Of a DNA stretch of 64,000 nucleotides, positions 20,776 through 49,359 are shown piece after piece (positions within the stretch are counted from its first letter, which is position 1; each line of letters opens with the position of its first letter). The stretch is from Chrysemys picta bellii. Lineage: Eukaryota. The notes under the pieces are model-generated. The model searched no databases. It was not told the origin of the DNA and saw only the letters and a program-made list of their open reading frames with translations. A program made the translations under genes and the position numbers. The stretch lies in contig NC_088810.1 in assembly GCF_011386835.1 (NCBI RefSeq), forward strand, positions 5,146,001 through 5,210,000. Reading direction: 5' to 3'.

Positions 20776-23700
20776 ATGCCTGCCCCCCAGCATTACCCCG
20801 AGCTGATCCAGCAGCACCGGCAGGCCCTGCTCTGCTGGATTAAGGGGAACCCCCAGCCCCTGCTGCGTCGGCTCCACGACACCAAGGTGCTGAGCCAGGC
20901 CGAGTACTTCGCCCTACTGGAGACGGCCCCCGAGATGAACCAGGTCATCGCGCTGCTGGAGTCGGTCAGCCAGGGTGTCGAGCGGAGCCGGTGCTTCCTG
21001 GAGGCGCTGCGGGAGCTGCAGGAGGAATACGGCGCCGAGCTCCAGCAATGGCTGAAGGAGAAGTACCCGGAGAAAAAGAGACCGTGTCCTCCATTGCAAC
21101 CAGGTACGGGGCCTGTCCCCTCTAGGGCGCACCAGCTCCCACCCAGCCCCAGGGCGGGGCACTGCCTGGCTCAGGGGGGTGGGACACGTGGCCTGTTCCC
21201 TCCAGGGGGCACCAGCTCCCACCCAGCCCCAGGGCGGGGCACTGCCTGGCTCAGGGGGGTGGGACACGTGGCCTGTCCCCTCCAGGGGGCGCCAGCTCCC
21301 ATCCAGCCCCAGGGTGGGGCACTGCCTGGCTCAGGGGGGCTGGCACTGGGGGCTGCATCTGTAATTTGGGGGAAATCACAGGAACGCCATAAGGTTCTGC
21401 CTCACGTCAGCCATCGCTGTGTCCAGGTGTCTTTCCCATCCCTTCCTCCAGCTTTCCATCTTCAACCATCCCTCCGTCTACCCGGCTTTCTTTTACAGCC
21501 TTCCACGTGGCCAGCCGTGGTTTTATGTCCCTCCAACCTGCCGTCCAAACAGCCTGTTTGATATCCATCATCCTTCCGTCTTTCTGTACCCAGACAGCCT
21601 TCCGATCCACCCACCCGTCCACCCATCCTTCTCTAGTTCCATTCACCCACCCACCCTTCCACCTATCCTTCTTTTATAGCTATCCATACAAATAACTGCC
21701 CTTTTTTCCATCTATCCATCCAACCCCCCCACCCACCCATCCAACCCCCCAACCATCCATCCACCCATCCAACTTTCCATCCATCCTTCTTTTACTGCTA
21801 CCCATACATAGATCAAATTATCCTTCTTTATATCCATCCATCCACCCATGCAACTTTTTTATATCCATCCACCCATCACAGGGTTCTCTACTCACCACTG
21901 GAGCGCCTCCTCCTGGCCCCTTGGAGGATTAGCGCTTTCCAGGTCCGATGCCCCTTCTGCAGGGTTGCGCCCCCTGCTGTCTCTCTCTCTCTCACTCTCA
22001 CACTCCGGGTGCTCTCCCTTCAAGGCTCGGCCCTCTGGCCAGCTCACCCTGGGTTTTCCCCCTTCCAGGGTATCAAAGTCTTTCCATAGTAACTGTCTCC
22101 AGCTGTCTTCTCAGTCACTGCCCAGGTGGCACCACTTCCCCAGGGGCTGGTGGGTAACACGGACCCAGCCTCTATTCCAGGTTCCAGCCCAGCAACCTTC
22201 TAATCCACAGCCAAGGTCTGCACCATCTTAAACCTCGCTGCCCTTTCCCTGCCCCTCTCCCCCGGCTCCCTTCCTTCCCTCGCTAACGTCCAGACAGTGG
22301 CTGCAGGCTCCTTCCTTGCAGCCCCCTTCTGCTGTGAGTTTCCTGGCTTTATCCCAGCCCCACCTGTTCCTGCTCAGCCGGGCTCCATCACCAGTCAGGG
22401 GTTACTTCAGCCGCTCAGTTCCCTTTAGCTGTGGCCTACACAGTTAACTGGCCCCTTCTCAGCCTCGTCCCATCTTTTTTATATCCATCCATCCATCCAT
22501 CCATCCACACAAGCAGCCTTCCAGCCATAGCCCCAGCTAGCCACATTTTTATATCTATCCATCCTTTATATCTATCCATCCATCCTTTTTATATCCCTCC
22601 AACCATCCATCCAGCCTTCCATCTATCTACCCATCCACCTTCCATCCATCTACCCTTCCAACCTTCCATTCATCCAACCTTTTCCATCCATGTCTTTTTA
22701 TATCTATCCACCTAACCAACGTCCATCCACCTTCCATCCGTCTACCCATCCAGCCTTCAATCCATGCAACCTTCCACCCATCCATCCGTCTTCTTTCCAT
22801 CCATCCACCCACACCTCCAGCCTTCCATCCATCTACCCATCCACCTTCCATCCATCTACCCTTCCAACCTTCCATTCATCCAATCTTTTCCATCCATGTC
22901 TTTTTATATCTATCCACCTAACCAACGTCCATCCACCTTCCATCCGTCTACCCATCCAGCCTTCAATCCATGCAACCTTCCACCCATCCATCCGTCTTCT
23001 TTCCATCCATCCACCCACACCTCCAGCCTTCCATCCATCTACCCATCCACCTTCCATCCATCTACCCTTCCAACCTTCCATTCATCCAATCTTTTCATCC
23101 ATGTCTTTTTATATCTATCCACCTAACCAATGTCCATCCACCTTCCATCCGTCTACCCATCCAGCCTTCAATCCATGCAACCTTCCACCCATCCATCCGT
23201 CTTCTTTCCATCCATCCACCCACACCTCCAGCCTTCCATCCATCTACCCATCCACCTTCCATCCATCTACCCTTCCAACCTTCCATTCATCCAATCTTTT
23301 CCATCCATGTCTTTTTATATCTATCCACCTAACCAACGTCCATCCACCTTCCATCCGTCTACCCATCCAGCCTTCAATCCATGCAACATTCCACCCATCC
23401 ATCCGTCTTCTTTACGTCCATCCACCCACACCGCCAGCCTTCCATCCATCTTTTTTATTTCCATCCATCCCCACATCCAGACTTGCAGCCTTCTTCCACC
23501 CATCTGTCATTTTATATCCATCCACCCACCCATCCAACCTTCCAGCTGTCCATCTTTCTCGTATCTATTCACTCATCCGACTCTCCTTTTGATATCCATC
23601 CATCCACACATCCAGCCACCTTTCTTTAATATTCATATAGCCAACTCTCTTTTTTTTATAGCCATCCACCCATCCAACCACTATTTTTATCTCCATCCAT

Positions 23701-26700
23701 CTTTCTTTTGCAGACAATCCCAACCCTCCGAAATCCAACCACACATTCCTGCGGAAAATCCTGCGGAAACACACCAAGAAGTATGAGCCAACCCCAGAGC
23801 CGCCAGGTGAGACCCCCCCTGCCACCCCCACCTCACCAACCAACCTCAGGAACAATTATCAATGCGGGATCATCAGCTCAAGACAGGCTGGGAGGGGAGT
23901 GGGGTCTAGTGGGTTAGAATAGGGGGACTGGGAGCCCGGACTCCTGGGTTCTATCCCTGTCTCTGGGAGGGGAATGGGGTCTAGTGGTCAGAATAGGGGG
24001 ACTGGGAGCCAGGGCTCCTGGGTTCTATCCCTGTCTCTGGGAGGGGAATGGGGTCTAGTGGTTAGCATGGGGGGGCTAGGAGCCAGGACTCCTGGGTTCT
24101 ATCCTCAGCTCTGGGAGGGAAGTGGGGTCTAGTGGGTTAGAATAGGGAGACTGAGAGCCCGGACTCCTGGGTTCTATCCCTGTCTCTGGGAGGGGAATGG
24201 GGTCTAGTGGTCAGAATAGGGGGGCTGGGAGCCAGGGCTCCTGGGTTCTCTCCCCAGCTCTGGGAGGGGAATGGGGTCTAGTGGTTAGCATGTGGGGGCT
24301 GGGAGCCAGGATTCCTGGGTTCTCTTCCCCAGTTCTGAGGCCACAGCTGGATGTCATGGAGGAGGTGTGGGCAGGGAGAGGCTTGGCACAGCCCAGCTCT
24401 GGGGCCCGGATTTGGGTCCTTCCCCCAAGCAACAAGGACACTTGTCCCTTGTCCAACAGGTGAGGAGCGCACTAGGAACCTGAACTTCCGAAAGGCCCCG
24501 AGCGCCCCGCTGAAAGGTATGGAGTGAGGGGGCTGGGTTGGGGAGGGAGGTCGGGGGAGGGAGGTCAGAGGGAGGGTCAGGGTGTTGGGAGCAGGGGAGA
24601 GAGTTGGGGTGACAGATGGGCCTGGGGAAGGGAAGGGAAGTTGTGGGGAGGGATGGAGGGGTGGGAGCGGGGGTTGGGGGCAGGGCCAGGGATGGTGGGG
24701 TCAGGTTAGGGGAGTTGGGAAAGGATCTTCGGGTTGGGGGCGAGGCAGGGGCAGAGATGGGGGTTGAGGGGAGGATTTGGGGGCAGAGATGGGGGAGTTG
24801 CAGAGGGATTGGGGGAAAAGATGGGGGTTGAGGGAGGCCTGGGGGAGGGGGGGACAGATAGGGGAGTTGCAGAAGGACTGGGGGCTGGGAGGGCTGGAGG
24901 AGTTAGGAGGCGGATCGAGGCGTGAGGGGCAGACCCTGGGGTCTGGGGGGTGCAGACACTCGACCCCCCCGCTGTTCCTCCCCTCCCCCCAGCTGTCCTG
25001 CAGCGCCACCGGGCCTCTCTGCTGCGGCATACCCAGCAGCTGTGCACCAACGCCAGTGACGCCCGCTCCTGCGGCCTCCTCGAGATCCGCTACACCCCGC
25101 TGCTGCTGCTGGACCACCCCGGCCCCACCGCCCCCCCCCGGGCATGAGCACCTGGCCCTGGCCGCCCGCCGCGCCCGCCTCCTCCCGCTCCACGCCCCCC
25201 GCCGGCTCCCCCTGCGCCACCTCCTGCCCCGCTGCCCACCGAGACCCAGGCCCCCCGCCGGGTGGCCCTGAGCGGCGCCGCCGGCATCGGCAAGAGCGTG
25301 ACCGTGCAGAAGATCTTGCACGACTGGGCGCTGGGGCGCGGCGTTCCAGGGCCCCCTCTGCGCCTTGGATTTCTCCTGCCGGGAGCTCAGCGTGATGTCC
25401 AGCCCGGTCACCCTGGAGGGGCTGATCTGTGCCAAGCGTCCCCACCTCCAGGAGGTGCTGCCCGAGCTGCTGGCGCGGCCCGGGGACCTCCTCGTCCTCG
25501 TGGACGGTTTGGACGAATTCCGGCACCCGCTGGAAGGCGGAACTCCCCGCCACCGGCCCGGCCACCCGGCCCACGTCAAGGAGCTGCTGCGGGGACTCCT
25601 CGACGGGACCCTGCTGCCCGGGGCGGCCCGTCGTGGTGACGTCCCGGCCGTGCCCGACCCTCTCCGGCATCCCCTTTGATCGCCACTTGCTGATCCTCGG
25701 CTTTGACGAGGACCAGGTGGAGGACTACTTCCACCGGTTCTTCCGGGATGCCGAGCGAGCCGCTGCCGTGCAGGGCTACATCTCCGGCCACCAAGGCTTA
25801 GCCGGGCTTTGCTTCATCCCCCTCTACTGCTTCATCTTATGCACCGCCCTGGGGGAGTTCTTCCCCGCCGGCCAGGCAGCTGACCCATCTCCGCCCACCA
25901 CCATCACCGAGGTCTATCGCTGCTATATGGCCACCATCCTGGGTCGCAGCTGGTCCTCCGGAGCCGGGCGCCGGGCAGCTGGTCCTGCGCCTGGGGCGCC
26001 TGGCGTACGCCGCCCTGTTGGCCGGCAAGATCCTCTTCACCCCAGCTGAGCTGCGGGAATTCGGATTCGACCCCCAAGACCTTCCGGGCACTTTCTTCAA
26101 CCCCATCTTCTCCAGAGAAGACCACCAGGTCTATTGCTTCTTCCACCTGACGGTGCAGGAGTTCCTGGCCGCGCTCTACTGCGTGGCTGCCCTGGATCCT
26201 GGCGCCGAGGACCTCACGCCCTGCCTGGATCTCTGGTGGGAGGGATCGGCCCAGCAGGACGGGGACCCGGAGCCCTCCTGGACGTCACCAGGCGAATCCA
26301 GTCTCCTCCACTCCACCAGGCAGCTCCTGAGGGGCCACCAGCCCCGGTGGGACAATCTCCAGATGTTCGCCAGGTTCTTCATGGGGCTGCTGACCTCCAG
26401 GATGGAGGGGAAGCTGGAGGGGTTGACCGCAGGCTTCTCCGGAGACGTGCTGGGGCCCGTGGCGGACTGGCTGGGGAGGAAGCTCAGGGGAGACACCGAG
26501 AGGCGCCTCCTCTCGCTCCTGCACTGCGTGGCGGAGCTGCGCCAGGAGGGGGTGACGGGCCGGGTGGCCCGCGAGCTGGAAGACGTCAACCTCTTCAAGG
26601 TGACCCTCAACCCAGCCGACTGCGCCGCCCTGGCCTACGTGCTGGGGGGCCTCCGAGCCCGGGAGAGTGAAGAACCTCAACTTGAGCTACAGCAACATGG

Positions 26701-26754
26701 CATGGCTGGGCTGCGCAGGATCCGGGGGCTGCTGCACCGCTGCGAGACGCTGCA

Positions 26755-26797
<43 letters not shown>

Positions 26798-28828
26798 CGC
26801 CACCCAGGACTCCTGGGTTCTAGCCCCAGCTCTGGGAGGGGGCCTAGTGGTTAGAGCAGGGGGGGCTGGGAGTCAGGACTCCTGGGTTCTATCCCTGGCT
26901 GTGGGTGGGGAGTGGGGGTCTAGTGGTTAGAGCGGCGGGGGGGGGGATTAAGAGCCAGGACTCCTGGGTTCTATCCTAGCTCCGGGAGCGGGGGGTGCTC
27001 GGTGCTCCGGTCCCCTCTCACGCTGACCACTCCTCTGCAGGTTGCGCTACAATTCTCTGGACAAGGAGGCAGCCGTCATAGAGGCCGAGGTGCTGAGATC
27101 CCCCCAGTGCCAAGTGAAACGGCTGCTGTGAGTGACCACGGCCCCAGGACGGGGCGCAGGCTGGCGGGGGGGGGGGGGCAATGGGGCACATGGGCTTTCC
27201 CCTCTAGGGGACCCCAGCTCTGATCCAGCCCCAGCGTGGGGACTGGCTGGCTCAGGGGGGCAGAAAATGGGCTTTGGGCCCTTCTAACTCCATATGGGAA
27301 TTGAGTTTGCCGGGTCTCAGCCCCGTTCCCAGCTGGGACAGGGACTATCTCCCCCTCTCCCCCCCTCAGATACTAACTGACCCCTTTGCTGGCAGCCCCA
27401 AAAGAGATGCCAAGGGCTGGCTGGGCCGTGGGGCGTGAGCCCCCCTCTCTGGGGTTCAGGGGTGGGATGCAGCCAGTGTTGTCGGGCTGGGGGGAATTTC
27501 TGAACTGGCCCCTTTCCCGCTCTCGAGTGGATCCCGTCGCTCTGCTACCCTGCAGCCTGTGCGGGAACTGCCTGGGCTCGGAGGGGGCGAGGCGGCTGTG
27601 GGAGGCCCTGCGGGAGAACCGCACCCTGGAGGAGCTGTACCTGGACATCACCGGCATCACCGACAGCGGCCTGGACAACCTGCTGCCCTGCCTCCTGGCC
27701 AACAGCACCCTCCGGCTCCTGACGTGAGTGCCAGCAGCTCCCTGCAGAGGGCTCTGTGCTGCGGGGGGAGCTCTCCCCTGACAGGCAGGGCTGGCCCGGA
27801 GCCCCAGCATGGCACTAGGGGGCGATGTGCTGCAGGGGGTGTGATGGGGACTCTCCCCTGACAGGCAGGGCTGGCCCGGAGCCCCAGCATGGCACTAGGG
27901 GGCGATGTGCTGCAGGGGGTGGGATGGGGACTCTCCCCTGGCAGGCAGGGCTGGTCCCGATGCCCCTGGGTGGCGCTAGGGGGCGCTGTGCTGCAGGGGG
28001 TGGGATGGGGACTCTCCCTTGGCAGTCAGGGTTGGCCCCAATACCCCTGCAGGGCGCTAGGGGGCGCTGTGCTGCAGGGGGTGGGATGGGGACTCTCCCC
28101 TGGCAGTCAGGGTTGACCCCAATACCCCTGCAGGGCACTAGGGGGCGCTGTGCTGCAGGGCCCCGATGCCCCTGGGTGGCGCTAGGGGGCGCTGTGCTGC
28201 AGGGGTGGGATGGGCACTCTCCCCTAGCAGTCAGTTCTGGCCTCAATATTGCATCTCTGCACCGGGTGAGGGGGTCCTTGTATAAACAGCCCGCACGCTC
28301 CACCACAGAGGTGGCCGCATTTCAGTGTTGAGTGAGGGATCCCTGTATAACTAGCTCTCATGCTGCACCCCAGCAGCAGCCGCATCTCAGCGCCCAGTAT
28401 ATACAATGGCTCCACCGCTGCCAGCCCCCGGCAAGCAATCCCAATATAAACCGGCCGCTGCACCCCAGAGGCAGCTGCATCTTTGCGATCCCCTTACGTG
28501 TTGTCCCCCGCCTCTGGGCAGCATCGTGGGGAACCGGCTGAGCGAGGCCGGGCAGCAGATCCTGTCGGAGCTGAGCCGTCGCAAGCCAGGCCTGAAGGTG
28601 ATCAGCACGTTCGAGAGCGACATGGGCCTGCTCCAGGCCTACCTGGACTGGGTGGAAGAGATCAAGGCCGACCCCGACCAGATGGACGCCGTGAAGAATG
28701 CCGACGCCCTGCGCTGCATCGTCTCCGTCCTCCGGGACTTGGACGAATCCAGGACCAGCCCCGAGGCCCGGGCCAGAATCCAAGAGCTGAGGAGAGAGAT
28801 CAGCGCCCTCCTGGGGGAGAAGGAATGA
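20776..28828 (+). CDS. CARD-NACHT-LRR NLR with NLRX1-like body and C-terminal three-helix domain, about 932 aa after correcting 7 frameshifts (assembly errors or recent pseudogene)
   Basis: Exons 20776-21103 (CARD: LIQQHRQALL...VLSQAEY), 23714-23806, 24460-24516, 24993-26754 (Walker A GAAGIGKS, Walker B LLVLVDGLDEF, VVTSRP, FHLTVQEFLAA), 27041-27127, 27556-27723, 28522-28828. All GT-AG with compatible phases. AATAAA at 29636. An upstream coding exon cannot be excluded because the ATG directly follows an acceptor. Confidence 0.85.
21873..22470. mobile_element. Probable degenerate LTR in NLR intron 1
   Basis: Complex block starting TCACAGGGTTCTCTACTCACCACTG inside a (CCAT)n tract; resembles turtle LTRs I recall; termini decayed, no clean TSD. 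Confidence 0.45.
22560..23480. repeat. ~206-bp tandem repeat built from CCAT/CCTT microsatellite (about 4 copies)
   Basis: TGTCTTTTTATATCTATCCACCTAACCAA recurs at about 22690, 22896, 23101, 23307. Confidence 0.85.
27811..28200 (+). repeat. 80-bp tandem repeat carrying CTCF-like motifs (6 copies) in the last NLR intron
   Basis: GGC(A/G)CTAGGGGGCG(A/C)TG at about 27811, 27891, 27971, 28051, 28131, 28178. Confidence 0.8.
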
Positions 28829-30639
28829 AAGGTGCTAGGAGCTGCACGTCTCGCTGCTAGGCTCCTTCCCGCCACAGGGGGGAGACACTCACTCAGATCC
28901 CCCATGATGACATCTGGGTAAAGCTGTAGGGTAACTTAGGTGTTTAGGGGAGCTGGAAACAGGACACGGGGCCTTTCCCCTGTAGGGGGCGCTGGCGCCC
29001 ATCTGGGCCCAGGTTCGGGGACTGGCTGGCTCAGGGGGGCAGGGAATGGGACCTTTCCCCTCTAGGGGCCACTGGCACCGATCCAGCCCCTGGGTGGGGG
29101 GCTGGCTGGCTCAGGGGGGCAGGGAATGGGACACGGGGCCTTTCCCCGCTAGGGGGTGCTGGCTCCCATCCGGCCCCAGATTATTCCCATCCGAATGGCT
29201 GTGTGTAATGACGGCGAGGTTCTCAGCTCCGTTCCCAGTAGGGCGGACACCCCCATTACCCTCCCCACCACAAGGACATTAAGCAGCCCTATTGCCGCCA
29301 TGGAGTCTGAACCCCCTCCTCCCTCATCTGCAGGGCATGGAGATAAACTGGCAGAGGGATGTGGGGCGGGGCCGGGGGGGGTCTGCCTGTGAATTTCACA
29401 GCAAGAGCTGGGATAGAACCCAGCTGCCAGTGCCTGGGAGTTACGGAGAATCCCTCTCATTCTGAGCACTATAGGGGACATGACACACGGTAGAACATAT
29501 CTACTTCCCTGCCACAGGGGGTAGTAGTGAGTACATCATCAGATTCACACTCCTCTGCTAATTTCAGTATAAACTCGCTCCGGGGTGGGAATGTTTTCAT
29601 ATAAATCCCCTTTAAAAAGGGAGCTATTTGTAATGAATAAATTTGTATTCCTAGTCATTGTTTGTATTGCTGTAGCCCTCAGAGCCCGAGTCCCGGGGGC
29701 TGACGCCGATGCCCCGGCACGGCACTGGGGGGCACTGTGCTCCAGGAAGCAGGGCAGGGTGGGGGCTCTCCCCTGGCAGTCAGGGCGGCCCCGATGCCCC
29801 TGGGTGGCTTATTGGGTGCTATGGTGAGATATTGTCCCAGTTCACTCAGGGAGTCTCTGGATGGATGGGGTGGGGGGTGTCGGATCATCCCACCCCTAAA
29901 TCCTGGGTTGACCCAGTCTAGCCGGGCCCCCCTACTGCCTCCCTTCTCCCTAGGGAGACCCCCCAATTCCCCCTTCCTTACCTCAATACCCCACGTCCCC
30001 TTGAACCATTCTCCCCACCCCATTCCCCATATTTGGGAAGTCCAAGCCCAGTTCACCCCCAAACACCTGGCACCCCCTCCCTGGACAGCTTGGTGCCCCC
30101 TCCCTCTCTGTTGCCCCAGAGACCCCAGGCTGGGGGTATGTGGATGGAGAGAGGGGTTCTGGGTGAAATTCCCATGGGGGGAACCACCCCTCTGCAGGGG
30201 GCATTGGGGTGCAATTTCCCCCCACTCCACCCTGCCCCCCCCTTTTGCTGCACACTGGACCCCTCCCCCATTTCTCTGTGTTAAGGACCTACCCCCCAGA
30301 CCAGAGTTCGATCCCCTCCTCGGGGGCCCTGATCCTTTTCCCCACATGCCAGGGGCCCTGATCCTGGCCTTCCCCTTCCCCACAGTGGGCTGCCCCCCTC
30401 CCCCCCATAAACCAGATTAGCCCAGCCCCCCACTAATCCCGGTAGGCAGCGACTGGCTGCTGGGCCAACTCCCCCAGCCCAGGGTGGCCAGGCCAGGGGG
30501 CTGGAGCAGCTGCCGGTGGGGCAGAGCCCGTCCCCCATCTCCTGTGTGCAGTTGGGGGGATCTGGGCTACCCCAGGGGCCCAGCTGGCAGGAGAAGCTGC
30601 AGAGTTAGAAGCCTCTCGACCCATCTCGCTAAGCCCCGC

Positions 30640-30910
30640 CCCAAATAGGCGTAGGTCCCGCCCACATCCCAATAGGCCCCTCCCCAGAGAACCATAGTCC
30701 CCTCCCATCCATGTCACCGCCCCCGGTCCCCTACGAAGCTCCGCCCTATCTCCTACAGCCTTTCTCCAGGCTCCGCCCCATCTCGCCACAAGCTCCGCCC
30801 TCCGCCCGTCTAGCCACGCCCCACCGCGTGGCGCTGATCGGTTTATTCCGCCCACGGAGCCGGGACCATGGAGGGGCCGAGCGGGGCCGCCCGGAGCGCG
30901 GGGTGAGGGG
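30640..30910 (+). promoter_or_regulatory. CpG-rich promoter and exon 1 of C19orf84
   Basis: Dense CpGs and repeated CCGCCC GC-boxes directly upstream of GGACCATGG (ATG at 30868). Confidence 0.65.
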
Positions 30911-33900
30911 CGGGGCGCTGCCCTCCTCCCCATAGACCCTCCCTTCCACCCCATAGACCCCCAGCCAGGGACCCCCCTTCCACGCCATAGACCCCCCCAG
31001 CCGCCCATGGGACCCCCAGCCAGGGAAACCCTCCTCTACAGAACCCCCCCTCCACCCCATAGACCCCCCCCAGGAACCCCCTCCACCCCATAGATCCCCC
31101 CTCCACCCCATAGACCTCCCCCAGGGACCCCCCTCCACCCCATAGACCCCCCCATAGACCTCCCCCAGGGACCCCCCTCCACTCCATACATCCCCCTTCC
31201 ACCCCATAGACCCCCCCAGCCAGGGACCCCCCTTCCATGCCATAGACCCCCCCCCAGCCACCCATGGGAGCCCCAGCCAAGGAAACCCTCCTCTACAGAA
31301 CCCCCCTCCACCCCATAGACCCCCCCCATAGACCTCCCCCAGGGACCCCCCTCCACCCCATAGATCCCCCTTCCACCCCATAGAACCCCCACAGCCAGGG
31401 ACCCCCCTTCCACCCCATAGATCCCCCATCTACCCCATAGACCTCCCCCAGGGACCCCCGCCCCATAGAACCCCAGCCAGGGACCCCCCCTCCACCCCAT
31501 AGCTTCCCTCCACCCCATAGACCACCCAGGCACCCCCCTCCGCCCCATAGAACCCCAGCCAGGGATCTCCCCTCCACCCCATAGCTTCCCTCCACCCCAT
31601 AGACCCCCCCAGGGACCCCCTTCCGCCCCATAGAACCCCCCAGCCACCCATGGGACCCCCAGCCAGCGAAACCCTCCCCCATGGAACCCCCCCTCCACCC
31701 CATAGACCCCCCCTTAGACCTCCCCAGGCACCGCCTCCGCCCCATAGAACCCCAGCCAGGGACTCCCCCCTCCACCCCATAGACCTCCCCCAGGGACACC
31801 CCTCCACCCCATAGACCCCCCATAGACCTCCCCCAGGGACCCCCCTCCACCCCATAGATCCCCCTTCCACCCCCATAGATCCCCCCCAGCCAGGGACCCC
31901 CCTTCCATGCTATAGACACCCCCCCAGCCACCCATGGGAGCCCCAGCCAGGGAAACCCTCCCCCATGGAACCCCCCCTCCACCCCATAGACCTCCCTCAG
32001 GGACCCCCCTCCACCCCATAGATCCCCCTTCCACCCCATAGACCCCCACAGCCAGGGACCCCCCCTCCACCCCATAGATTCCCTCCACCCCATAGACCAC
32101 CCAGGCACCCCCCTCCGCCCCATAGAACCCCAGCCAGGGGTCTCCCCTCCACCCCATAGCTTCCCTCCACCCCATAGACCCCCCCAGGGACCCCCTTCTG
32201 CCCCATAGAACCCCCCAGCCACCCATGGGACCCCCAGCCAGCGAAACCCTCCCCCATGGAACCCCCCCTCCACCCCATAGACCCCCCCTTAGACCTCCCC
32301 CAGGCACCCCCTCCACCCCATAGAACCCCAGCCAGGGACTCCCCCCTCCACCCCATAGCTTCTCTCCACCCTATAGACCCCCTCAGGGAACCCCCTCCAC
32401 CCCATAGCTCCCCCCAGCCACCCATGGGACCCCCAGCCAGCGAAACCCTCCCCCACTGAACCCCTTCTCCACCCCATAGACCCCCCCCTTAGACCTCCCC
32501 CAGGGACCCCCTCCACCCCATAGAACCCCAGCCAGGGACCCCCCTTCGACCCCATAGCTTCCCTCCATCCCATAGACCTCCTCAGGGAACCCCTGCCACC
32601 CCATAGACCTCCCCCAGGGACCTCCCTCCACCCCATAGACCCCCCCCAGCTGCCCATGGGACCCCCAGCCAGGGAAACCCTCCCCCATGGAATCCCCCTC
32701 CACCCCATAGACCTCCCCCAGAGACTCCATCCATGGGAACTCCCATTCCAGCCCCATAGATCCCCCCAACCAGAGACCTCCATGCCTCCCATCCGACCCC
32801 CTCCACCCCATAGAACCCCAGCCAGGGACCCCCCTTCGACCCCATAGCTTCCCTCCACCCCATAGACCCCCTCAGGGAACCCCCGCCATGCCATAGACCT
32901 CCCCCAGGGACCCACCTCCACCCCATAGACCTCCCCCAGAGACTCCATCCATGGGAACCCCCATTCCAGCCCCATAGATCCCCCCAACCAGAGACCTCCA
33001 TGCCTCCCATCCGACCCCATGTCCAGCCCCTTAACCCCACAACCAGGGCATCCTCCCCGACATTAGAACTCTCTTCCAGCTTAAGAGTCTCCCTTCCTCC
33101 AGCCCCACCCAGCCAGGGAACCCCCTCCCACAAACACCCCCACACACAGACCACCGCCCCTCCCTCCATAGAATTCCCATCTCCTGTTGGAGAGGGGAGG
33201 ATCTCTCTGTCTCTGACCCCCTTTTCCGTTCCCCCCGCAGCTCCCCCAGGCCCAGCGAGCCCAGCCCCACAGAGCCGCCCGCCTCGGACCAGACCGCGCT
33301 GGAGAAGATGCCCGTTGTGCCCTCCTGCCCTACCCCCGGCTCTGCCACACCTTGGATCCTGGGTCGCCCCTCGGCCGGGGCCCTGTCCTCCATCACCGTG
33401 CCCGTCCGGCTGGACGCCCTCGCCTACCTGCTCAACAGCGCCCTCTTGGGGGCCTACTCGGCCTTGCCACAGACGCCCCTCTCCGGCAGCCACGGGGCAT
33501 TGGCCATGGGTCACGGCGGGCCTCCCCAACATGCACTGGGCTGCGGGTGTCAGCCACGCTACTGCTGTGGCCCCCAGCCGGCTCGGGTGGGGTGCTGTGG
33601 GTCTGGCGCCGTGGGGCAGAGCAGCGCCGGCTGCTCCCAAGAGATACCTGGGGGCCGCAGCGATTGGCAGGACTCCTCTGCGAGATGGGACCGGCGAGGG
33701 TCTCCGTCGCTGAGTGGCTGGGGGGAGAACCGGCGAGCAAGGGGGCAGAAAGATTTCAGTCGGCCCTGGGGGTGGCAGAGGCCGTGGGGCGAGGCGGACT
33801 CCGCCCCACGCAAGGCGGGACAGTGGGGGCCGGGGAGAGCCCAGAGCTCAGATTATGCGGCCAGGAAGCGGAACCAAGATGGCTGCCCGTGGGACGCCCC

Positions 33901-34435
33901 TGGGGCAAAGAGATGGTCTAGTGGGGGGGTGAAGAGATGGGGGGAAACTGAGGCAGCCAAAGCCACCAGGGAAGATTGGGAGGCAGATTACGGGGGATCC
34001 AGCGCCCGAGGGAGCGTCTTGGAGAAAGCCCGGTCTTCCCAGCCCAGCCTCCCAGCTTCCCAGGAAGGAGAAGACTGGGAAAAGGAGTATGAGGAGTCCC
34101 CCAAATCGGCGCCGGGGGTTCCCCCTCTTCCACAGGTGGCTTTGAAGGTTCAACCGGCCTCCCTCCAGGAGAGGACAACGCCCCGCCCAGCTTGCAAGGA
34201 CGGCAGCGTCTCCAGCTATCTCCAGAACCTCTTTGCCGACCTGCGCGGGGGGTCCAGCACCGCCTCAGAGCCGCGCCGGGGGAGACAGCCCCCTGGAGGT
34301 GCCGCCGAACGTGGGACACGGCTCCCGGAAGGAGGAGGAGGCCCGAGTGGCCAGGGGTCTGCCAAGCTCGGCGATTTCACGGCCCAGCGCGTTGACCTCC
34401 CCAGAGCCGCCGCAGAGAACGAGGACAGTGCGTGA
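30868..34435 (+). CDS. C19orf84: C19orf84 orthologue (piRNA-pathway/SPOCD1-associated factor in mammals), 409 aa, 2 exons
   Basis: Exon 1 30868-30902 (MEGPSGAARSAG, donor GG|GTGAG, phase 2) joins exon 2 33241-34435 in frame. Block SSITVPVRLDALAYLLNSALLGAY (33386-33457) matches human [24 protein letters not shown] as recalled (17/24 identical). Cys cluster, GW motifs and EDWExxY are also shared. Lies directly upstream of LIM2 on the same strand, as in human. Confidence 0.85.
30920..33000. repeat. C-rich minisatellite filling most of C19orf84 intron 1
   Basis: CCCCATAGACC...CAGCCAGGGACCCCCC units over about 2.1 kb; source of the Gly/Trp-rich reverse pseudo-ORFs. Confidence 0.9.
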
Positions 34436-34569
34436 GCCCTGCCGAAGCTGGGGCCTCATGGTTCTCCCATCCAACCGGCCACCCGTTGCTGACTCCACCA
34501 GCCCACCGGGCTCGGCCGTTCAGCCAAGGGTTGGTTTGTTGTTAACTCCGTTCTTTTTCATCCTCCAGC

Positions 34570-35090
34570 ATCTACCCATCCTCCTCCATTCCTAACCTGT
34601 CCCAACAAGTCTTCTACCCATGATCCTCCCTTCCTAGCCCTCTTCCCATCATCCTCCATTCCTAGCCTTCTACCCATCATCCTCCATTCCTAACCTGCCC
34701 CAACAAATCTTCTACCCATGATCCTCCCTTCCTAGCCTTCTACCCATCATCCTCCATTCCTAGCCTTCTACCCATCATCCTCCATTCCTAACCTGCCCCA
34801 ACAAGTCTTCTACCCATGATCCTCCCTTCCTAGCCCTCTACTCATCATTCTCCATTTCTAGCCGTCTACCCATGATCCTCCATTCCTAACTTGCCCTAAC
34901 AAGTTTTCTACCCATGATCCTCCTTTCCTAGCCCTCTACCCATGATCGTGGACCCCAATCAAGCTTTCTATCCATGATCCTCCCTTCCTAGCCCTCTACC
35001 CATCATCCTCCATTCCTAGCCCTCTACCTGTGACCCTCCACCCCAAACAAGCCTTTTCCCCAGGATCCTCCATTCCCAACCTCTTGTCTT
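34570..35090. repeat. ~27-bp tandem repeat downstream of the C19orf84 stop (probable 3'UTR)
   Basis: TTCTACCCAT(C/G)ATCCTCCATTCCTAGCC units; first downstream AATAAA at about 35872. Confidence 0.8.
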
Positions 35091-38781: not shown

Positions 38782-41084
38782 ATGTACAGCTTCATGGCAG
38801 GGGGTCTTTTCTGCGCCTCGGTCGGGAACATCCTGCTGGTGGTTTGCACAGCCACTGACTACTGGGTGCAGTACCGGCTCCAGGGAGCCTTGGCCCACCA
38901 AGGCCTCTGGCGGTACTGTCTGGCGGGCAAGTGCTACATGCAGATGGAGAACATTGGTAAGGACCACTAGGGGGCACTGTGCTGCAGGGAGCGGGGTGGG
39001 GGCTCTCCCCTGGCAGGCAGGGCTGGCGCAGATGCACTAGGGGGCGCTGTGCTGCAGGGAGCGGGGTGGCGACTCTCCCCTGGCAGTCAGGGCTGGCCCC
39101 AATGCCCCCAGGGCGGCGCTAGGGGCACTCCCAGAGGCCCTAGCATGTTCTCCAAGAGGCATTCGGCTTCCCTAAATCCTCCCTCAAGCTGAGATTTTCA
39201 TTTGCTTCCCTCCTAAATTGCACTGAATTGTGAATTAACCAGCCACTGTGCCCTGCCCCAGAGGTGGCTGCATCTCAGCACCAGGCGAACCAGCCCCGCA
39301 TGGTGTTATGTGTGGCTGTTCCACAGCTGCTCTGCCCCAGAGGTGGCTGCATCTCCGCAGTGGGCGAACCATCCCTGTGCAGTGTTATGTGTGGCTGTTA
39401 CCCAGCTCTCCCGCCCCAGAGGCAGCTGCATGTCTGTGCCAGGAGAGCCAGCCCCATGCAGCATTACATGTGGCTGTTCCCCTGCTTCCCTGCCCAGAGG
39501 TGGCTGCATCTGTGCGCCGGGCGAGCCGTCCCCTTCTAAACAGGAGCGGTTTTGAGTGTTTTCTCCCCGCTGCTCTAGCCTACTGGAATGCCACCCGGGC
39601 CTTCATGATCCTCTCTGCCCTGTCCTGCTTCGCTGGCATCATCACGGGGATCTTGTCCTTTGCCCACCGATCCACCTTCGAGAAATTCAACCGGTCGTTC
39701 GCTGCTGGGATAATGTTCTTCGTCTCCAGTAAGTGTCTGCCCACTGCCGCGGGGACCCCAGCTGGCCACCAAGACACAAGGAGGAGAGCAGGGTCTAGTG
39801 GTTAGAGCGGGGGGGCGGGGGGCTGGGAGCCAGGACACTTGGGTTCTTTTCCCAGCTCTGGGAGGAGAGTGGGGTCTAGTGTTTAGAGACGGGGGGCAGT
39901 GGGAGCCAGGACGCCTGGGTTCTCGCCCGGTTCTGGGAGGGGCGTGTGGTGTAGTTACACTTCCCAGGCAGGAGGGCCTGAGAATCAGGACGCCTGAATT
40001 CTCTCCCCAGCTCTGGGAGGGGAGTGGGGTCTAGTGGTTACAGTGGCGGGGGAGGGGCTGGGAGCCAGGACTCCTGGGTTCTATCCCAGCTCTGGGAGGG
40101 GCGCGGGGTGCAGTAGTTAGAGCAGGGAGGGGCTGGGAGCCAGGACTCCTGGGTTCTATCCCAGCTCTGGAGGGGCACAGGGTGCAGTGGTTAGAGCAGG
40201 GGGAGCAGGGAGGAGCTAGCAGCCAGGACTCCTGGGTTCTATCCCAGCTCTGGGAGGGGAATGGGGTGTAGTGTTTAGAGACGGGGGGCAGTGGGAGCCA
40301 GGACGCCTGGGTTCTCGCCCGGCTCTGGGAGGGGCGCGTGGCGTAGTTACACTTCCCAGGCATGTAGCGGTTTCTCTGGCCTCTTGTCCTGCCATCGGTC
40401 TCTCTGCCCCACCTCCTCCAGCGCTCTTCGTCCTGCTCGCCATGGCTGTCTACACCGGAGTCACCGTCAACTTCCTGGGCAAGCGGTTCGGGGACTGGCG
40501 CTTCTCCTGGTCTTACATCCTGGGCTGGGTTGCCCTGCTCATGACCTTCTTCGCAGGTACAGGCCCTTCCCCTCTAGGGGGCGCCAGCTCTCATCCAGCC
40601 CCGGGGCGGTGGGGGCAGTGTGGGGGCTGGCAATGGGGCTTTCCCTCTGGGGGTGGCAATAGGGCACCTTTCTCCTCATCCAATTCCTTGTTTCACACTC
40701 CCTGTCCAGGAATGCCCCGGCTCTGACCAGTAACCCCCCTCCCAGAGCTGGGGAGAGAACCCAGGAGTCCTGGCTCCCAGCCCCCGTGCTCTAACCATTA
40801 GACCCCACTCCCCCTCCAGAGAACCCAAGAGTCCTGGCTCCCAGCCACCCCCCGCTCTAATCACTAGACCCCCACTCCCCTCCCAGAGCTGGGGAGAGAA
40901 TTCAGGCGTCCTGACTCTCCTGCTCTAACCACTAGACCCCATTCCCTTCCTGGAGCCAGGGAGAGAACCCTGGAGTCCTGACCCCTCAGTGCTGTTAAAC
41001 AGCCCCTCTCTCCCCCTCACAGGGATATTTTACATGTGCGCGTATCGGATGCACGGATGCCAGCGCGTGGCTGAGACGCGTTAA
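38782..41084 (+). CDS. LIM2: Lens intrinsic membrane protein 2 (MP19/MP20), 173 aa
   Basis: Exons 38782-38956 (175), 39579-39728 (150), 40422-40556 (135), 41023-41084 (62). MYSFMAGGLFCA...GLWRYCL...AYWNATRAFMILS...FGDWRFSWSYILGW...GIFYMCAYRM. Intact. Candidate non-coding exon donor at 38233; AATAAA at 41762. Confidence 0.95.
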
Positions 41085-47963: not shown

Positions 47964-49359
47964 ATGGCGTCTCCCCGGATCCTCAGCACCGTCCTGGCCC
48001 TGCTCAGCTTCCTGCTGCTGCTGGTGGCCCTGGGCTCCGACCACTGGCTGGTGGCCACCAGCCGCCTCGGGTCCCTCCATGAGGGGCTGTGGAAGAGCTG
48101 CCAGAATTCGGTGTGTGAACAAATTTCTTCAGCATCAGGTAAGGGCAGCCCGGCTCCACCGGGGAACCCACCGCTGCCACCAACCAGCACCATCGGGCAG
48201 GTCTGTCCCTGGCTGTGGGAGGAAAGTGGGGGCCAGTGGTTAGAGCAGGGGGGCTGGGTGTCAGGACTCCTGGGTTCTCTAACCAGTTCAGTGCAGTGTT
48301 GTTTATTTAACCCAATCCTTTGCTACAGTCTCTTTAAAGGTCACCAGGGCTTTCATACTGCTGGGCGTGATCGCTGGGTTTCTCTCCTCCTTCGCTCTCC
48401 TCGCCTCGTTCCTGCGCTCCCACCTCGGCTCCTTACCTCTGACCCTGCTCTCCTTCCTGGGCAGCTTCAGCGCAGGTACGTCCCCCCTTCCCCCAGGAAC
48501 TCATCTCCCCCCCCCCCGCCCACTACAGCCAGCCGAGGGGAACCGAGCCCCAGCCTCCCCCCTCCCCGAATCCTACCCTGGGCTCTGGCAGCTCCCCCTG
48601 GTGGTGGGACGGGGCAGGGGCTGGGACTGAACGTGGGCTGCACTGAGGGGTGTCCTTGCTGTTCCCTTTGCCCCAGGGCTCTGCACCATGATCGCGCTGG
48701 CCATGTACACAGGGGAGTTCGCTGGGGCCGTGAATGCCGCCCACAGCCAAGTCACCTTCGGCTGGTCCTTCGGCCTCGGCTGGGTCTCCTTCCCCCTCTT
48801 CCTCATCACTGGTGAGTGCAACATTGGGGAGTGTCAAAAGGCAGCTGCCTCTGGGGTGGGACACGGGGGCTGGTTCTATAGGGACCCATCGCCCGGCGCT
48901 GAGATGCACCCACCTCTGGGGTGGGGCACGGGGGCTGGTTATACAGGGACCCCTCTCCCGGCGCTGAGATGCACCCACCTCTGGGGTGGGGCACGGGGGC
49001 TGGTTATACAGGGACCCCTCGCCCGGCGCTGAGATGCAGCCACCTCTGGGGTGGGGCACGGGGGCTGGTTATACAGGGACCCCTCGCCCGGCGCTGAGAT
49101 GCAGCCACCTCTGGGGTGGGGCATGAGGGCTGGTTATACTGGGACCCCTCGCCCGGCGCTGAGATGCAGCCACCTCTGGGGTGGGGCACAAGGGCTGGTT
49201 ATACAGGGACCCCTCGCCCGGCGCTGAGATGCAGTCACCTCTGGGGTGGGGTGCTGCGTACCAGTAGATGATGCTCCCATTGGTCCCATTGCTGCTCTGA
49301 GCCCATTTCTCTTCTCTCCTCCAGGTGTGGTGACGCTGGTCGCCCACCAATCCTCCTAG
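47964..49359 (+). CDS. NKG7-like tetraspan protein B, 163 aa
   Basis: Exons 47964-48138 (175), 48329-48475 (147), 48677-48811 (135), 49325-49359 (35): same sizes and phases as gene A, frame open. ATTAAA at 49486. Directly downstream of LIM2, the position of NKG7 in human. Confidence 0.9.

Follow-up and report, generated by a model that had tools for sequence, protein, structure and literature searches.

Mouse work linking C19ORF84 with the piRNA machinery and DNA methylation reportedly comes from Zoch et al. 2024. In two papers (PMC7618654, PMC13757620), mouse C19ORF84 is described as binding SPOCD1 and as necessary for SPOCD1's association with DNMT3L/DNMT3C. Such binding and association are known for the mouse only. 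The distribution of these genes across vertebrates was presented in PMC7618676 (EMBO J 2025), a survey relying on the gene names in annotation files. In that survey, C19ORF84 first appears in axolotl, with Anolis, alligator, and Rana scored as lacking it, and SPOCD1 is found only from lobe-finned fish onward. Its table gives human C19orf84 as chr19:51,388,289-51,390,591 and lists chicken and zebra finch as lacking C19ORF84, PIWIL4, SPOCD1, and TEX15 jointly. The piRNA pathway genes of the axolotl show mainly germline expression (PMC7618676). The painted turtle Chrysemys picta bellii itself is included in Dataset EV1 of the same paper, which scores the species positive for C19ORF84, PIWIL4, SPOCD1, TEX15, SPIN1, and DNMT3L.

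In the current study, a 64-kb window of the painted turtle genome, meaning the whole stretch of DNA analyzed, was investigated. It is very likely that the locus described here is the painted turtle C19orf84, a two-exon gene that is spliced and transcribed, with a presumed function like that in the mouse and its product probably representing an ancestral long form of the protein. The gene lies on the + strand in two exons (30868-30902 and 33241-34435) encoding 409 aa, and its features and neighbors are as follows.

20776-28828, + strand: NLR gene, with CARD, NOD2 winged helix, and NLRC4 HD2 Pfam matches in open reading frames of the window; the upstream anchor
30600-30999, no strand: small CpG island with the promoter and exon 1 inside; CpG observed/expected 0.72-0.77, GC 0.64-0.74
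30868-30902, + strand: coding exon 1, 35 nt, ATG at 30868, coding for MEGPSGAARSA plus two bases of the Gly12 codon; donor GTGAGG
30903-33240, + strand: intron, 2338 nt; acceptor AG at 33239-33240
33241-34435, + strand: coding exon 2, residues 12-409; TGA at 34433-34435
34436-34500, + strand: first part of the 3' UTR; relative to the window, four of four runs have 34 additional bases at 34441
38782-41081, + strand: LIM2 (lens fiber membrane intrinsic protein), coding sequence in four exons, with PF00822 exon matches; the downstream anchor

The exons of 35 and 1195 nt give 409 codons plus the stop; the exon 1 translation is the N-terminus of the NCBI protein P0001, and the spliced product matches this protein (409 aa) at 100% identity. 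On either side of the island at 30600-30999, the CpG observed/expected ratio is <=0.2. The sequence, the CpG ratio, and the identity with P0001 thus confirm the initial annotation, which had described a two-exon, 409-aa reading frame with a 12-codon first exon in a CpG-rich promoter. Approximately 2 kb of the intron (30921-32943) is filled with a C-rich minisatellite whose unit is CCCCTCCACCCCATAGA and whose higher-order periods range over 52-490 nt, as revealed by Tandem Repeats Finder. As this long tandem repeat was excluded from the read layout, the splice junction was read from the loose ends of contigs. RNA-like contigs from runs X1 and X2 had zero depth over 33000-33239 and covered 33240-34500, and the loose end before 33240 consisted of the final exon 1 bases (30880-30901), which demonstrates the 30902/33241 junction. 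The predicted junction is therefore present in spliced contigs of two public runs, whose tissue is coded. Chelonia mydas and Pelodiscus sinensis, as well as a paralogue within the painted turtle genome, have a 35-nt exon 1 and splice sites identical to those of the window gene, indicating that the gene model is not due to chance. The dN/dS values of exon 2 against other turtles (0.35-0.53) point to moderate purifying selection. The differing 5' end of the organism-B transcript was absent from the 64-kb window.

The turtle gene is already known, as it is named in public annotation and its presence in the species was published in 2025. The NCBI entry with the identical 409 aa is titled "C19orf84 homolog [Chrysemys picta bellii]", and in other turtles the annotation reads 'piRNA-mediated silencing protein C19orf84 homolog'. 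Two expectations of the initial annotation fail on these data: that the gene would escape annotation owing to low-complexity divergence is contradicted by the RefSeq naming of the exact 409-aa model, and the novelty of C19orf84 outside mammals by the positive score of this species in PMC7618676. For the turtle gene itself, the present study confirms existing annotation and a published statement and adds little.

Several lines of comparison identify the turtle gene, at the sequence level, as a true C19orf84 orthologue. The alignment of sauropsid and mammalian C19orf84 profiles by hhalign gave a probability of 98.6% and an E-value of 1.3e-15 over 59 columns. BLASTP against the elephant protein gave 5e-10, with the alignment reaching through the GW tract, and a separate match paired EDWEKEY with the C-terminal EDWESEY. 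The turtle protein contains the family helix SxTVP[IV]RLDxLxYLLxSA followed by the CxC..CC cluster and, downstream of the helix and in mammalian order, an Arg/Gly/Trp-rich tract and EDWExEY. When its N-terminal part was used as a query against 5.8 billion proteins, 34 of the 75 candidates matched, and every one of them belonged to the family: two came from turtles, 29 bore the name C19orf84, and three were unnamed Logan sequences with a PF17703 tag; the best mammalian match was 1.6e-5 at that database size. Precomputed protein-collection tags also assign PF17703 to turtle proteins. The direct Pfam match to PF17703 had an E-value of 2.8e-7 to 2.9e-6 and 27.6-30.9 bits against a curated cut-off of 40, covering profile positions 40-84 of 200 only; an elephant member scores 239 bits.

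The gene order further supports the assignment. LIM2 starts 4.3 kb downstream of C19orf84 on the same strand, with coding exons at 38782-38955, 39578-c.39750, 40418-40561, and c.41025-41081 (all +), the first three being 77-87% identical to the lizard lens fiber membrane intrinsic protein by tblastn. The order NLR, C19orf84, LIM2 is common to the window, Chelonia, Pelodiscus, and the lizard Podarcis, so that the described position immediately upstream of LIM2 is both correct and conserved. Human C19orf84, at 19q13.41, adjoins human LIM2 as well. The claim of an intact C19orf84 orthologue is thus borne out by hhalign, BLASTP, the LIM2 position, and the specificity of the search. As a true orthologue that is intact and transcribed is found in a turtle, the gene is older than the mammal-sauropsid split, which supports the earlier proposal.

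The turtle protein is predicted to be almost wholly disordered; AlphaFold2 placed helices at residues 69-85 (pLDDT ~91) and 335-344 (pLDDT ~65). A solved structure of mammalian C19orf84 was not found in the PDB. The alignments divide the protein into five short conserved modules in a fixed order, namely the amphipathic helix VPVRLDALAYLLNSALLGAY, a Cys cluster, an Arg/Gly/Trp tract, a pair of EDWExxY motifs ~33 residues apart, and an SSYLQNLF helix, located as follows.

33386-33460, + strand: conserved block SSITVPVRLDALAYLLNSALLGAYS, with the PF17703 match and the hhalign match to mammals; the predicted helix of residues 69-85 corresponds to nt 33410-33460
33542-33595, + strand: cysteine cluster GCGCQPRYCC...GCC, residues 113-130, aligned with mammalian SCPC..ACC by hhalign and BLASTP
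33662-33940, + strand: Arg/Gly/Trp-rich tract with GW/WG dipeptides, ~residues 153-245, from alignments and motif counts
33971-33991, + strand: first acidic-aromatic motif EDWEADY, residues 256-262, equivalent to the extreme C-terminus of mammalian proteins
34070-34090, + strand: second motif EDWEKEY, residues 289-295, from alignments and the motif table
34208-34240, + strand: C-terminal motif VSSYLQNLFAD, residues 335-345, the second predicted helix

Translation of 33386-33457 gives SSITVPVRLDALAYLLNSALLGAY and verifies the TVP.RLD.L..LL.SALLGAY block reported in the initial annotation. Among 25 sequences, which range from shark to mammals, P66, R68, L69, D70, L72, L75, and A79 never vary. 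C115 is likewise invariant, whereas E256, D257, W258, and Y262 are fixed or almost fixed. The Arg/Gly/Trp-rich tract has the lowest dN/dS of the protein segments (0.24-0.33). The second EDWxxY is present in shark, caecilian, salamanders, and Sceloporus and is missing in mammals, and VSSYLQNLFAD is kept in turtles, squamates, one frog, and one caecilian. Residues 263-409 have no mammalian counterpart; therefore, the turtle protein may act differently from its mouse counterpart. This module map (helix, Cys cluster, W-rich tract, EDWxxY, and C-terminal helix) provides mutation targets for mapping the contacts with SPOCD1 and DNMT3L.

Unnamed homologues with preserved motif order were found in squamates, the tailed frog Ascaphus, a caecilian, and catsharks (Scyliorhinus LOC119965835), and such a distribution would date the adaptor to the jawed-vertebrate ancestor. 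We consider it likely that C19orf84 arose in that ancestor, as PIWIL4 did, and not on the tetrapod stem, and that the ancestral protein was long and carried two EDWxxY motifs, a form kept by the turtle and truncated in mammals at the first motif. As the profile search traces the adaptor to cartilaginous fish and squamates, some published "losses" may be gaps in naming. The final word-indexed profile search, which scored the 8000 candidates richest in shared words, most of them low-complexity, added one snake only and was uninformative on crocodilians, birds, and bony fish. This family survey bears on the timing of the origin of piRNA-directed DNA methylation.

The known partners of C19ORF84 were also sought in the painted turtle genome. 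A SPOC-domain exon of SPOCD1 (62 aa) lies at G000:C23:14031905-14032090, and its best match is PDB 8OU1 (SPOCD1) at 1.9e-17, versus 4.9e-8 for PHF3. Three PIWI-clade loci were found: PIWIL2 maps to C2 and PIWIL1 to C15, and C1 carries, at 326.89 Mb, another gene that is PIWIL1-like; this third locus fits PIWIL4 by exclusion, because the PDB has no PIWIL4. TEX15, at C5:10.71 Mb, is intact, with a match of 3e-85 inside a 2674-aa open frame. The ADD_DNMT3 domain search gave 19 genome matches, among which DNMT3L was not distinguishable; the PMC7618676 table scores DNMT3L as present in this species. The partner set suggested in the initial annotation is thus represented by the SPOCD1 exon, the third PIWI-clade gene, and TEX15, in agreement with the published table.

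By analogy with the mouse protein, turtle C19orf84 would be a scaffold built from short linear motifs. It would bind SPOCD1 and recruit the machinery for de novo methylation (DNMT3L/DNMT3) to those transposon loci that PIWIL4-piRNA marks in germ cells. As contact sites, the invariant helix and EDWxxY are the likeliest candidates.

A second intact C19orf84 copy is present on chromosome 17 of the painted turtle, and its intron carries a repeat related to that of the window intron. The possibility that this paralogue is a retrocopy was ruled out, as it retains the intron and splice sites. Because a second copy exists, roles may be split between the two copies. It could also be supposed that the gene in the window is decaying or non-functional and that the chromosome-17 paralogue is the working copy. 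Apart from the existence of that intact copy, the evidence runs the other way: the window copy sits at the ancestral LIM2-linked site and forms the shortest branch of the tree, and a pseudogene is ruled out by its intact frame, a dN/dS <1 against two other turtles, and its splicing into RNA. This reading, already disfavored, is barely credible. Similarly disfavored, and highly improbable, is the view that the resemblance is a short common motif in a fast-evolving low-complexity gene beside LIM2, which would not be a C19orf84 orthologue. The Pfam score under the gathering cut-off and a strong alignment confined to ~45 residues would be consistent with it, but four further features occur in mammalian order, the LIM2-adjacent position is conserved, the profile-profile E-value is as given above, and no proteins other than turtle and mammalian ones of the C19orf84 family came out of the search.

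A different objection accepts the orthology and proposes for the turtle gene a role that differs from, or extends beyond, the SPOCD1-DNMT3 axis, for instance that of a general nuclear scaffold or one in the soma, with germline methylation being a later mammalian specialization. It draws on the C-terminal region of residues 263-409, which is conserved from caecilian and frog to turtles, on the homologue in catsharks, given a published SPOCD1 range that begins only at lobe-finned fish, and on the assembly of the transcript at appreciable depth in the tissue-coded runs. Nevertheless, the modules common with mammals (helix, Cys cluster, and EDWxxY) are the most conserved parts of the protein, all known partner genes are retained in the painted turtle genome (DNMT3L according to the published table), and the joint absence of the four genes in chicken and zebra finch fits one shared pathway. 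We regard this objection as unlikely and retain the reading of the locus as a C19orf84 orthologue with a presumed role like that of the mouse protein.

Among the known members of the family, the squamate proteins (for example, LOC128418490 of Podarcis raffonei, LOC121915977 of Sceloporus, and LOC112542701 of Python) are of similar length (434-478 aa), with the module order of the turtle and a C-terminal FxxYLKNLYSD helix, and the Podarcis gene occupies the position between the NLR gene and LIM2. They differ in that their identity to the turtle protein is ~30%, most have one clear EDWxxY, and none is named C19orf84, with the two members scanned, those of Phrynocephalus and Podarcis, giving no PF17703 match at E up to 0.01. 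The Ambystoma protein P0019 (931 aa) is probably the axolotl C19ORF84 of PMC7618676, where it is part of a full nuclear piRNA pathway gene set. It shares with the turtle protein the helix and the twin EDWxxY/DDWxxY motifs, whereas its length exceeds twice that of the turtle protein, its long C-terminal tail shows little conservation, and it contains no GW/WG dipeptides against seven in the turtle. The mammalian proteins (PF17703) resemble that of the turtle in the helix SxTVP[IV]RLDALxYLLxSALLGAY (19 of 23 residues identical), the CxC...CC cluster after it followed by the Arg/Gly/Trp-rich tract and EDWExEY, the predicted disorder, and the location of the gene next to LIM2. In contrast, they have ~180-190 aa compared with 409 aa in the turtle, whose PF17703 score falls under the gathering cut-off, and they end exactly at the first EDWxxY, where the turtle protein continues for ~150 residues with a second EDWxxY and the SSYLQNLF helix. 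The turtle protein is probably the ancestral long form, of which the mammalian proteins retain nothing beyond the first EDWxxY.

The two-exon C19orf84 gene proposed by the initial annotation was recovered exactly by direct reading of the window sequence, every boundary included:

30868-30902, forward strand: exon 1, 35 nt from the ATG, followed by the donor GTGAGG.
33241-34435, forward strand: exon 2, preceded by the acceptor AG at 33239-33240 and closed by TGA at 34433-34435.

In genome coordinates, the window corresponds to G000:C20:5146001-5210000. The spliced product of 409 aa was 100% identical to P0001 of Chrysemys picta bellii, listed at NCBI as 'C19orf84 homolog', and the conserved block at 33386-33457 encodes SSITVPVRLDALAYLLNSALLGAY. 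The CpG-rich promoter was found as a small CpG island at 30600-30999 (observed/expected 0.72-0.77). Almost the entire intron consists of a C-rich minisatellite, and a further tandem array, built of a 28-nt unit with a higher-order period of 98 nt and 93% matches, was seen at 34571-35076, in or just past the 3' UTR.

Sequence of exon 2 was present in four small sequencing runs. In X1 and X2, which derive from organism A in one study, the contigs placed on 33000-34500 started exactly at 33240, with zero depth over 33000-33239. The unaligned bases at the 5' ends of these contigs, AGCGGGGCCGCCCGGAGCGCGG, are those of the 3' end of exon 1 (30880-30901). These data show that the 30902/33241 junction expected from the gene model exists in RNA. 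In run X5, from organism B, a closely related turtle, exon 2 at 33240 was joined to another 5' sequence, ...GATAATAGTGACTGCGG, which was not found in the window; either this is a first exon, alternative or specific to the lineage, or the contig is chimeric. In the sea-turtle-like protein P0007 (247 aa), ...PLSSG is fused to ETEAAKA... and the Cys cluster and Trp-rich tract (about residues 95-250) are skipped, which may reflect an alternative intron within exon 2 in some turtles. All four RNA-like runs carried 34 extra bases (GGCTGTGGAAAGGCCTGTCAGGGCTCCCGCCTGG) at 34441, just past the stop codon, that are absent from the window; the window has either a deletion allele or a reference assembly error, and the coding sequence is unaffected.

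Concerning the relationship to mammalian C19orf84, the sole Pfam match was PF17703 (C19orf84), with an E-value of 2.8e-7 and 30.9 bits, under the cut-off of 40, over 45 of 200 profile positions. When a 155-aa N-terminal turtle query was searched against 5.8 billion sequences, only family members were returned: two turtle sequences, 29 mammalian proteins that bear the name C19orf84 (the best at 1.6e-5) and three Logan sequences without a name but with a PF17703 tag. The profile of ten sauropsid proteins matched that of ten mammalian proteins with 98.6% probability (E 1.3e-15), spanning the helix and the next CxC..CC cluster. BLASTP against elephant C19orf84 (5e-10) continued through the Gly/Trp-rich tract, and a second match paired the turtle EDWEKEY with the C-terminal EDWESEY of elephant. 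What the turtle and mammalian proteins share is thus a succession of motifs in one order rather than a single short motif, and orthology is supported.

The gene order is in line with the placement upstream of LIM2, which starts on the same strand 4.3 kb further downstream. The upstream neighbour is an NLR gene whose domains are CARD, NOD2 winged-helix and NLRC4 HD2, and the annotations of Chelonia mydas, Pelodiscus sinensis and the lizard Podarcis raffonei give the order NLR, C19orf84, LIM2 as well. The 90% cluster of the C19orf84-like Podarcis protein P0016 includes LIM2-like proteins of 178 aa as well as Podarcis muralis models of 714-726 aa, a composition that suggests read-through gene models in which the two adjacent genes are fused. 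On either side of the region, in opposite orientation, are two near-identical last exons of another PMP22/claudin-family gene; their identity to LIM2 is about 31%, and they may be NKG7-like duplicates:

3258-3437, reverse strand: last exon, PMP22/claudin family.
48667-48846, forward strand: last exon, PMP22/claudin family.

The painted turtle genome also holds a second copy:

G000:C17:6140153-6141409, reverse strand: intact C19orf84 paralogue (locus L002, LOC122174587), 431 aa.

Its exon 1 is likewise 35 nt with the same splice sites, and its 1110-nt intron carries a minisatellite related to the repeat in the window intron. Compared with the window copy, dS is 0.32 and dN/dS 0.56. Homology to the window starts at exon 1 and reaches about 1.9 kb beyond the stop, and a stretch related to the 34 extra bases is present in its 3' UTR. 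No LIM2-like neighbour adjoins it. In the tree, it fell outside the LIM2-linked clade, in a group with proteins of Platysternon and Gopherus (support 96/95), indicating an old duplication. One contig of run X3 carried the paralogue 3' UTR, so this copy is probably transcribed. P0075 (Platysternon megacephalum, 402 aa), deposited as 'coronin-1A', belongs to the paralogue group, and its name looks wrong.

The gene itself was confirmed. Its supposed novelty outside mammals and its concealment from annotation were refuted, because RefSeq names C19orf84 in at least seven turtle species (Chrysemys, Mauremys, Pelodiscus, Emydura, Caretta, Dermochelys and Chelonia), and Dataset EV1 of a 2025 EMBO J paper (PMC7618676), which uses Chrysemys picta bellii, already scores PIWIL4, SPOCD1, C19ORF84, TEX15, SPIN1 and DNMT3L as present. 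The same table lists C19ORF84 as absent from Anolis, alligator and Rana. Screening 1.84 billion representative proteins with a profile, and then looking up names, revealed full-length homologues tagged merely "uncharacterized":

P0011-P0022: unnamed proteins with the C19orf84 motif order, from squamates (Podarcis, Sceloporus, Python/Liasis, Paroedura, Phrynocephalus), the frog Ascaphus, the caecilian Rhinatrema, the salamanders Ambystoma and Pleurodeles, and the catsharks Scyliorhinus canicula and S. torazame.

The helix was present in all squamate, amphibian and catshark homologues found, and BLASTP of turtle against catshark gave two matches in the same order (3e-14 and 1e-5). These homologues fall in lineages scored negative in the published survey (Anolis, Rana) or preceding the stated first appearance (sharks), and the published absence looks like a naming gap, at least for squamates. 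The catshark gene lies between a MARVEL-domain gene and CLPTM1, whose human counterpart is on chromosome 19q.

For the proposed PIWIL4-SPOCD1-C19ORF84-DNMT3 axis, several partners were found in the painted turtle genome. A SPOC-domain exon at C23:14031905-14032090 matched the solved SPOCD1 SPOC domain (8OU1) at 1.9e-17 versus 4.9e-8 for PHF3, and a separate locus was clearly PHF3-like. The PIWI clade comprised three loci: PIWIL2 on C2, PIWIL1 on C15 and, on C1, a further gene that is PIWIL1-like and fits PIWIL4. TEX15 matched at 3e-85 inside a 2674-aa open frame. For DNMT3L, none was singled out among 19 genomic matches to ADD_DNMT3 (PF17980; e.g., C1:305944589-305944753, C11:48717534-48717701 and C9:31669260-31669427), at least eight of them full-length or nearly so, each in a single open frame. 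This number far exceeds the three expected DNMT3 genes, and retrocopies or a repeated gene family may account for it.

Chelonia and Pelodiscus have the same 35-nt exon 1 and the same two splice sites, and dN/dS against them was 0.53 and 0.35, respectively, with the lowest values over the helix region and within the Trp-rich tract. AlphaFold2 (25-sequence alignment) predicted a disordered chain (mean pLDDT 52) in which residues 69-85 form a confident helix (pLDDT about 91) and residues 335-344 a weaker one; the protein is best read as a disordered adaptor made of short linear motifs. In the mouse, SPOCD1 is a direct binding partner of C19ORF84 and needs it to associate with DNMT3L (PMC7618654; PMC13757620). 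By analogy with the mouse protein, turtle C19orf84 would bind SPOCD1 and enable its association with DNMT3L. The mammalian proteins end exactly at a single EDWxxY, whereas the turtle long form carries two such motifs, as do the shark, caecilian, salamander and Sceloporus homologues, with a spacing of about 33-57 residues across these proteins. Probably, therefore, the long form is the ancestral one and the mammalian proteins are truncated.
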